DNA of 63,611 bases, counting the filler, from Reticulomyxa filosa (taxonomy: Eukaryota; Protista; Foraminifera), in the NCBI GenBank assembly GCA_000512085.1. It is 13 parts of 13 records of this genome, joined end to end, with 100 filler letters (N's around TTAATTAATTAA, not from the genome) between each part and the next. Parts side by side here need not be neighbours in the genome. Positions count along the whole stretch, not along the records: positions 29,357 to 30,746 come from ASPP01010370.1; 12 more parts are not named here. One strand, 5' to 3'. A program made the position numbers and the translations under genes. Position 1 is the stretch's first letter. Each line of letters opens with the position of its first letter. This document shows, one piece after another, positions 29,357 to 30,846 of the stretch. Below the pieces are notes generated by a model. The model had not been told where the DNA came from and did no database searches. It saw only the letters and a program-made list of their open reading frames with translations.

Positions 29357-29973
29357 AAGCTCAGCTTGATGGCCACGACCAGGCCGGTGACCGCAATGCT
29401 GGACAGGATGAGGCCGAACACGCGCGTTATGATCTCGATGCCCGGCTTGCCGAGCAGGCGAAACAGGGTTCCGGCGACGGCGTAGACGACGAAGAGCAGG
29501 CAGAGGCAGAGCGCCAGGATCGCCGTGGTCGTGACCTGCTCGCCGAGCGAGCGGACATTGTTGTCGGTCAGCAGCACGACCGTGAGGATCGCGCCGGCGC
29601 CGGCGATGCCGGGAACGGCCAGCGGGAAGACCGCCCGCTGGAACGGCGTCGCATCGGGCGGCACGCTCATGGCTTCCTCGGCCACCTTGCCCAGTGCCAT
29701 CTTGAGGCCGAACAGCAGCAGGATGAGCGATCCCGCAAGCTGGAACGAGGCCATGGGAATGTGGAGTGCCGCCAGCAGCGGCCTTCCGACCACGATGAAG
29801 AAGAGCATGACGAGGAACGCGACGCCCAGCGCGTAGGCCGCAACCAGCAGCGATTGCCGCCGATCGAGGCCGGCCGTGACCATGAGAAAGATGGGCACGG
29901 TGGCGAACGGATCGAGGATCACGAGCAGGGTGACGAATTCGTAGAAGAAGTCGTGGAGAAATGCTTGACCCAA
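29357..29973 (-). CDS. marC: MarC family (UPF0056) inner-membrane protein; last few codons cut off by the contig end
   Basis: FVTLLVILDPFATVPIF, SFQLAGSLILLLFGLKM, AVFPLAVPGIAGAGAILTVVLL and LGKPGIEIITRVFGLILSSIAV are MarC hallmarks. The likely start is TTG at 29973 after an AGGGAAG SD, not the ORF-track start at 30267. Confidence 0.93.
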
Positions 29974-29998
29974 GCGAGGCTTCCCTGATTGTTGCCTC

Positions 29999-30027
29999 AC
30001 AAGAGAGTGCCGGGCCAGGACTGTCAA
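29999..30027 (-). promoter_or_regulatory. Candidate sigma70 promoter for marC
   Basis: Perfect TTGACA on the minus strand at 30022-30027, about 50 nt upstream of the marC start; the -10 element is weak. Confidence 0.3.
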
Positions 30028-30250
30028 CGTAACAGCCCGTCCCGTGATGCGGGCAACCGGCCGGTTCACGCCCCGGGGACGTGGCCGATATTGGCCCCGG
30101 CGCCTTCGGCCGGATCTCGGTGATCCTTGCTGTCGCTCATGCAGCGCCGGCGTGCGATCTGGCCGCCGGCTCATCGACCCTCCGTCACCTCGGACGCAGG
30201 CGGTGCGCACTCGATTGCGGTCCGAGCGGTGCCGTGACAGTATTTTCTCC

Positions 30251-30257
30251 GAGAGGA
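30251..30257 (+). promoter_or_regulatory. Shine-Dalgarno site for the RiPP precursor
   Basis: GAGAGGA ends 8 nt upstream of the ATG at 30266. Confidence 0.75.
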
Positions 30258-30265
30258 ATGGCAGC

Positions 30266-30433
30266 ATGGACGAAAAGTCAGATCATCAGACCAAGCCGGT
30301 AACGGGCAAGCGGGTTTATTCCGCCCCGGTGTTGCAGCGCTTGGGAACGCTGAAGGACCTCACGCGATCCGTAGGCCAGAGGGGCTCCAAAGACGGTGGG
30401 CGCTCCGGCAATCAAAAAAAGACCAGCTGGTAG
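30266..30433 (+). CDS. Lasso-type RiPP precursor peptide (55 aa)
   Basis: MDEKSDHQTKPVTGKRVYSAPVLQRLGTLKDLTR-SVGQRGSKDGGRSGNQKKTSW. YxxPxL at -17/-14/-12, Gly-8, Thr-2, core Ser1 with Asp9; good SD. Confidence 0.85.
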   Translation: MDEKSDHQTKPVTGKRVYSAPVLQRLGTLKDLTRSVGQRGSKDGGRSGNQKKTSW

Positions 30434-30525
30434 GCTTGGCGCTGCGCGATGAGCTTCCGGGCATCTCCAGGTTCCGAGGCCACACGCCGCCGTCTGCAGC
30501 AGGCTGGACTGGCCCGCGAAGGTGC

Positions 30526-30744
30526 CTACTCACCGCGGTCTCGTCGCAGAGCGTCCCTGGCCAGCTTCGATCGCCGGTTTCGGGCCCTGACCTGGGATGA
30601 GACGAACACCGCATCGCATCGTCTTGCGACCGGCCATCCGGCCTGATCGTATACCCTGAACAGGTAGTAGCCGAGGGGATCCAGATAGTCCCGGAAGGAC
30701 TGGAAGGGGACGTGGAGCTTGTTGGTCGCGTTGAGGCCGCATTC
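30526..30744 (-). CDS. FkbM-family SAM methyltransferase, C-terminal 72 aa (5' end off the contig; not in the ORF track)
   Basis: Manual translation ECGLNATNKLHVPFQSFRDYLDPLGYYLFRVYDQAGWPVARRCDAVFVSSQVRARNRRSKLARDALRRDRGE*. The E...F..YL..LGY.LF..Y......D.VF pattern is typical of FkbM C-termini. Confidence 0.65.
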   Translation of the reverse strand, partial: ECGLNATNKLHVPFQSFRDYLDPLGYYLFRVYDQAGWPVARRCDAVFVSSQVRARNRRSKLARDALRRDRGE

Positions 30745-30846
30745 GANNNNNNNNNNNNNNNNNNNNNNNNNNNNNNNNNNNNNNNNNNNNTTAATTAATT
30801 AANNNNNNNNNNNNNNNNNNNNNNNNNNNNNNNNNNNNNNNNNNNN

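Follow-up and report, generated by a model that had tools for sequence, protein, structure and literature searches.

A solitary gene for a lasso-type precursor peptide, probably from Reyranella-like Alphaproteobacteria, in the Reticulomyxa filosa assembly

A small gene for a lasso-type precursor peptide stands alone among housekeeping genes in Reyranella-like Alphaproteobacteria. One copy was found in the window (the whole stretch of 63,611 nucleotides under analysis), on a 1.39 kb piece of 64% G+C (29357-30746, ASPP01010370.1) from the Reticulomyxa filosa assembly GCA_000512085.1. Judged from its leader and core, the 55-residue product belongs to a widespread family of lasso precursors. We lean, by a modest degree, towards a peptide that would still be a lasso substrate, encoded by a real, independently transcribed and unlinked precursor gene. 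Maturation in trans by enzymes located elsewhere is plausible on this reading.

A conserved gene of 55 codons

The gene occupies positions 30266-30433 on the plus strand, from an ATG at 30266 to a TAG at 30431-30433. A Shine-Dalgarno-like GAGAGGA (30251-30257, plus strand) ends 8 nt before the ATG, and the gene lies in frame within a GTG-started ORF of 129 residues (30044-30433). Both the ribosome-binding motif and the nesting in a longer ORF had been pointed out in a preliminary description of this DNA, and both are borne out. The longer ORF is an artefact of GC-rich DNA, because homologues carry stop codons just upstream of the conserved ATG. Such stops are found immediately 5' of the peptide ATG in L005, L006, L026, and L028, and the 129-residue extension is not conserved. 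At the position of the GAGAGGA, homologues display the weaker GCGAG or ACGAG.

Two other genes are found on the piece, both on the minus strand. A MarC-family membrane protein gene (29357-29973, TTG start at 29971-29973), the C-terminal end of which is cut by the edge of the piece, matches Pfam PF01914 (4.9e-35) and shares 95.6% identity with the L001 MarC; it is outside the peptide system. Convergent with the peptide gene lies the 3' part of an FkbM-type methyltransferase gene (Methyltransf_21, 30526-30746, stop at 30526-30528), which matches PF05050 (7.4e-16) and is 90% identical to the L001 gene by tblastn. It stops 7 codons before this L001 orthologue (L001 2270-2968, minus strand). A role as a tailoring enzyme, in a lassomycin-like manner, was considered and dropped because the gene is convergent and confined to one synteny group (group A, see below); it is probably unrelated to the peptide.

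At least ten close homologues of the peptide were found. Those recovered by a word-indexed search are 91% (P0001) and 71% (P0002) identical to it, and genome and metagenome scans contributed others of 55-75% identity: L005 (a Rhodospirillales MAG), L006 (a Reyranella MAG), and L026-L031. Among named organisms, Reyranella sp. and Rhodospirillales MAGs come closest, Reyranella belonging to the family Reyranellaceae (NCBI taxonomy). The preliminary description took the piece for a bacterial contig in a protist assembly, a putative assignment. Short contigs almost identical to the piece over the peptide gene were found in metagenomes from freshwater and aquatic sources, and also in runs of the coded "organism A"; none of the runs containing the locus was an RNA run. 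Exact-sequence look-ups of the 55- and 129-residue products returned no match.

Pairwise dN/dS values among close homologues range from 0.09 to 0.40, and purifying selection is seen in the peptide frame alone, each of the other five frames being interrupted by stops in at least one homologue. Selection is strongest on the predicted core (dN 0-0.02 at dS 0.3-1.6 between synteny groups B and C). The leader motif is constrained too (dN 0.03-0.20 at dS 0.2-1.9), and the first 16 residues vary freely. The 55-codon gene is therefore real. It is short and no Pfam model matches its product, as would be expected of a chance ORF in GC-rich DNA, but homologues in many contigs have diverged with a synonymous bias, the competing frames are broken, and the start, the stop, and an upstream block are all conserved. 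A chance origin has in effect already been refuted, and it retains a negligible probability.

A family of lasso precursors

The leader (M1-R34, 30266-30367, plus strand) is composed of a variable stretch, residues 1-16, and of residues 17-34, which carry the motif Y18-x-x-P21-x-L23-x3-G27-x5-T33-x. The predicted core (S35-W55, 30368-30430, plus strand) has Ser1 and Asp9 as putative isopeptide partners and a 12-residue tail ending in K-K-T-S-W. This cleavage site and core register are predicted from the Thr at -2 and from the cluster-embedded relatives described below. The preliminary description had placed Y18, P21, L23, G27, and T33 at -17, -14, -12, -8, and -2 from Ser35, and had described a 21-residue core with Asp at position 9 and a single C-terminal Trp; every one of these positions is correct. 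The peptide thus displays the leader of lasso precursors of class II, split-B type (YxxPxL...G...T at -2) together with a suitable core: a small residue 1 (Ser35), Asp43 at position 9, and a length of 21 residues, for a norm of ~15-25 residues with Asp or Glu at positions 7-9. The core has a pI of 11.1, a net charge of about +3.5, and, after loss of H2O, a calculated monoisotopic mass of 2201.105 Da. Its tail is poor in bulky residues able to plug a 9-membered ring, with R12, then Q/K/K, and W21.

The lasso leader HMM proposed earlier as a check gave a match: residues 18-37 score 22.1 bits (E 1.1e-4) against NCBIfam NF033521 (lasso_leader_L3), above its curated cut-off of 19, although this is a leader-only domain model that says nothing on the core or on the presence of enzymes. 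The core pattern of the family is also found in the lasso peptides of NF033528 (lasso_cyano), which go with NF033535 (lass_lactam_cya) cyclases. Against lasso_cyano, however, the window peptide scores 15.7 bits, under the 33-bit cut-off; its clade is alphaproteobacterial, and its gene is linked to no cyclase. Leads, and no more, came from the ESM Atlas: unnamed clusters (0.90-0.91) and names connected with lasso peptides, Subterisin and DUF5972 (0.80-0.81).

A profile built from three sequences and run against 1.84 billion protein cluster representatives (E<=1e-3) retrieved 118 of them, nearly all 42-96 residues long. In the alignment of 115 sequences used for counting (A3), G27 is invariant (115/115), and Y18, P21, L23, and T33 are each kept in at least 109, T33 in 114. 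In the core, G37, G40, and D43 are all conserved at 90% or more (G37 in 104/115, D43 in 112/115, or 97%), and T53 is present in 101/115. Position 35 is A, S, T, or G in 93 sequences, and Lys, Met, Asn, Gln, Arg, or His in about 20; from there to the C-terminus most members count 19-21 residues. The lasso_leader_L3 model matches 93 of the 115 members and lasso_cyano 86, the best at 5e-12. Loss of the leader motif or of Asp9 in homologues had been set beforehand as a refutation of the lasso assignment; both are retained. Two other early impressions have to be revised. The Gly/Lys/Arg-rich core, initially called unusual, is conserved across the family and is therefore a family signature (xVGxxGxxDGG...K/R-K/R-T) and not an oddity of this copy. 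The peptide is also less novel than supposed, the family being already covered by NCBIfam models. Among the proteins retrieved by the profile, P0007, P0048, and P0029 harbor 2-4 tandem leader-like K-x-Y-x-x-P-x-L...G...T modules per ORF; P0029, a 199-residue protein with DEPSGS-type cores, looks like a member of a different, multi-core family.

The gene content around distant members argues that the family is truly a lasso one. Five independent members, of about 40-48% identity, adjoin genes for a PqqD protein (B1), a transglutaminase-like B2, and an Asn-synthetase-like cyclase (C), in canonical clusters. In P0131 (L018, a 495-kb contig), the order is PqqD, Transglut_core3, Asn_synthase, precursor, and HprK-like, and it is the same in P0107 (L019-21). 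In P0128 (L036-39), an HprK-like gene is followed at some distance by B2, C, B1, the precursor, and NTP_transf_5, and in L032-34 the precursor precedes C, HprK-like, B1, and B2. In P0088 (L016, L015), a cyclase fragment lies directly upstream, and an ABC transporter and NTP_transf_5 lie downstream. An HPr-kinase-like gene and/or a nucleotidyltransferase is thus often part of these clusters. Their B2 proteins match the NCBIfam "lasso peptide biosynthesis B2 protein" above cut-off, and the best NCBIfam matches of their PqqD proteins are lasso PqqD chaperones. For the cyclases, NF033535 ranks first with L018 and with the fragment of L016 and third with L032, each time far short of its cut-off. 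The embedded precursors share the register of the window peptide, with T(-2), Ser, Ala, or Thr at position 1, and Asp9 (Glu8 in P0107).

Some of these clusters have further neighbours. In L019 (1-11046; also in L020 and L021), the lasso cluster comes directly after a polysaccharide-synthesis operon (Wzy, glycosyltransferases, Bac_transf, DegT) and lies ~2.4 kb upstream of rpoB-rpoC, two further genes being located in between. In L036 (2261-11339), the cluster of the same family is accompanied by two 2OG-Fe(II) oxygenase genes, PhyH, an HprK/ScmC-like kinase, and NTP_transf_5, which suggests a heavily tailored product.

Several known systems resemble this family in part. Alphaproteobacterial class II lasso peptides include ones with a 9-residue ring closed on Asp9 (e.g. 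astexin-1) and ones with Ser1 or Ala1 (caulonodins IV-VII). Their precursors belong to A-C-B(-isopeptidase) clusters, with hypervariable cores and bulky plug residues. The window peptide is similar to them in its predicted residue-1-to-Asp9 isopeptide, its lack of Cys, and its host class, but it is unlinked and its core is conserved and Gly/Lys/Arg-rich. Phosphorylated and phosphoglycosylated lasso peptides (paeninodin, the Sphingobium yanoikuyae-type proteobacterial clusters, and pseudomycoidin) have been reviewed (PMC8498205). By gene content, the cluster-embedded relatives are of the paeninodin/pseudomycoidin type, with split B1/B2, a cyclase, and an HPr-kinase homologue and/or nucleotidyltransferase, and the window family likewise has a conserved hydroxyl residue near the C-terminus. 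However, paeninodin-type kinases act on a C-terminal Ser, whereas the window peptide ends in Ser-Trp and its conserved residue is a Thr at -3; the orphan loci contain no kinase match. PqqA and MftA, both RRE-dependent, likewise combine a leader of RRE type and a conserved core in a short peptide. They differ in having no sequence relationship to the window peptide, in being clustered with their own enzymes, and in their chemistry; by analogy, the likeness favours a physiological product over an antibiotic.

A solitary gene with its own upstream region

As a rule, the genes for lasso precursors and for their enzymes lie together. No RRE, leader peptidase, or cyclase gene lies beside the window copy, as the piece holds, in addition to the peptide gene, only the MarC and methyltransferase genes. 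The clade of the window peptide displays at least three synteny contexts. In group A (window, L001), the gene is located between MarC and the methyltransferase; in group B (L005, L027, L031), between MlrC with a 365-residue protein and NadE with an acyl-CoA synthetase; and in group C (L006, L026, L028, L029), between an esterase and an Mrp antiporter. In L002-L004, it is followed by an ABC substrate-binding protein gene. The flanks available for clade members, 2-10 kb to each side, contained no lasso enzyme gene, Pfam matches revealing housekeeping neighbours only. HMMs for B1, B2, C, the kinase, and the nucleotidyltransferase were built from four or five cluster examples and recover every known cluster; they detected nothing at E<=0.01 in the window piece, L001, L005-L008, and L022-L031. 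The Ser1-Asp9 lasso peptide of the preliminary description is thus sustained in one respect, the peptide being a homologue of lasso precursors by its leader HMM match and by cluster-embedded relatives of the same register, and lacks support in another, the gene not being part of a lasso cluster.

Two neighbouring clades are solitary too. P0005 is found between NDUS4 and a TonB receptor/PiuC, and P0125 between an MFS transporter and a 329-residue protein. P0125-type peptides carry a C-terminal extension (GRGGHHLL...). The 329-residue ORF (L022 10326-11315; also in L023-L025), which is conserved across four contigs, lies on the strand of the P0125-type peptide gene and begins 35 nt downstream of it. 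Neither Pfam nor NCBIfam has a match for its product, which also bears no similarity to the kinase and nucleotidyltransferase HMMs; it could be a partner of that peptide. A phylogeny of weak resolution places nothing but orphans in the window clade (SH-aLRT 91). The orphan state requires 2 changes on this tree against a shuffled mean of 5.4, a clustering that partly reflects relatedness. Literature searches combining Reyranella with lasso, PEP-CTERM with lasso, or addressing orphan lasso precursors returned nothing relevant.

Upstream of the gene, a block of about 35 nt moves with it into different contexts and is nearly invariant in 8 homologous loci of differing genomic context. In the window (30210-30243, plus strand), this promoter-like block is composed of CTCGATTGCGG (30210-20), with TTGCGG as a possible -35 element, a 17-nt spacer, and TG-n-CAGTAT (30235-43) as a possible extended -10; an invariant TGCCGTGACAG (30230-40) is contained in the spacer region. 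A second conserved block, TCATCGACCCTCCGTCAC (consensus TCAACCTTACGTCAC), lies further upstream at 30171-30188 on the plus strand. The ensemble of TCAACCTTACGTCAC and CTCGATTGCGG-N9-TGCCGTGACAG (window 30171-30243) is kept in L001, L002, L005, L006, L027, L028, and L031 despite their differing flanking genes. From this arrangement we infer a TTGCGG-N17-CAGTAT promoter with an extended -10, and the two non-coding blocks probably correspond to a promoter and an operator. A simple scan for sigma-70 and terminator consensus motifs did not call the promoter-like block and found nothing else. Sigma-54 and ECF-type readings were rejected by eye, their spacing being wrong. An RNA fold of the upstream block is unsupported (consensus energy -7.2 kcal/mol, covariation term +0.35), and Rfam gave chance-level matches only across the piece. 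A riboswitch or leader RNA was therefore discarded, and a promoter or operator is preferred.

Possible maturation in trans or reuse of the precursor

If the peptide is still a lasso substrate, an RRE would recognize its leader Y18-x-x-P-x-L...G...T33, and B2 would cleave behind R34. A cyclase would then adenylate the Asp9 side chain and join it to the amine of Ser1. The product, with the mass given above, would be a ring of 9 residues encircling a cationic tail of 12. The conserved Thr/Ser near the C-terminus might, in addition, be phosphorylated. The gene itself, in Reyranella and related Alphaproteobacteria, would be unlinked, vertically inherited, and served by its own conserved promoter-like region. 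As the precursor is unlinked from enzymes, its maturation would need enzymes encoded elsewhere in the genome. Continued recognition by an RRE and by B2 would explain the purifying selection on the leader motif and on T(-2). A predicted complex of the window peptide with the L032 B1, from another organism, gave weak support, with 0.49 against 0.01 for the best control; the L032-type set is the one with the most similar leader. Of the solved complexes, 51 of 78 attained this mark, as did 2 of 108 mismatched pairs. At 0.60 or below, just 5 of the 78 attained it, and so did all 4 mismatches that passed (of 180). Contacts agree between runs to at least 87%, and the partner pLDDT is at least 54.

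The most serious rival is an exapted or relict precursor: descended from lasso precursors but no longer processed as one, the peptide would act in unmodified or differently modified form as a small basic peptide with a conserved cellular role. We consider this possible, and clearly the less probable of the two. It would account for the solitary, vertically inherited state of the gene, unlinked and with housekeeping neighbours only in at least three synteny groups and in both neighbouring clades, and for the clustering of the orphan state on the tree. The near invariance of the core at dS values up to 1.6 is what a fixed cellular partner would impose. Typical antibiotic RiPPs display the opposite conservation pattern, and the fact that the core is here far more conserved than the N-terminal leader counts against a lasso substrate. 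So does the loss of the YxxPxL proline in L006 (6231-6395) and L028 (1126-1290), in which Leu replaces it (YSALIL); the group sisters L026 and L029 retain Pro. The scarcity of bulky plug residues in the tail and the lack of enzyme genes near the clade members weigh in the same direction. Selection on the leader motif and on T(-2) would, however, be difficult to account for if no RRE and protease acted on them; length and register are the same as in cluster-embedded relatives, and the predicted complex with a family RRE, weakly positive, points the same way.

Other readings concern the chemistry. Cleavage before Gly37 would yield a 7-residue Gly1-Asp7 ring, as in xanthomonins. Known lasso peptides most often begin with Gly, and G37 is better conserved than position 35, which is occupied by a non-small residue in some 20 members. 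This register would however shift the almost invariant Thr33 from its canonical -2 to -4, and position 35 is Ser or Thr in the window clade and Ser, Ala, or Thr in all five cluster-embedded examples; we hold it to be improbable. Less probable still is that the peptide is the substrate of another RRE-dependent, non-lasso RiPP pathway with similar leader recognition. PqqD-like RREs do serve many RiPP classes (PMC8498205), and no enzyme genes are seen beside this copy, but all relatives found with enzymes nearby have complete lasso B1, B2, and C (a cyclase fragment in P0088), and the high conservation of Asp9 counts against this reading.

The basic classification of the peptide is ordinary, because an existing NCBIfam model already names such ORFs, and its solitary, strongly conserved state is the sole unusual aspect. 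Tentatively, a lasso-type precursor that is passed on vertically and has its own promoter may persist in Reyranella-like Alphaproteobacteria outside any biosynthetic cluster, its cationic core almost unchanged. The peptide would then be served in trans by a B1/B2/C set that is encoded elsewhere and has no precursor of its own, or else would have been exapted without knotting. Strong purifying selection on the core of a stably unlinked precursor points to a conserved target or physiological role, and not to an arms-race antibiotic. Lasso genome mining anchors on the cyclase and the protease and then seeks a nearby precursor, so that precursors located elsewhere are missed. If the peptide is matured in trans, its product would belong to a class of lasso peptides invisible to such enzyme-anchored mining, and would probably be physiological rather than antibiotic. 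Confirmation of this route would add unlinked substrates to lasso pathways and provide a compact, highly cationic scaffold; were there no maturation in trans, the gene would illustrate how a RiPP precursor can find a second use as a small protein.
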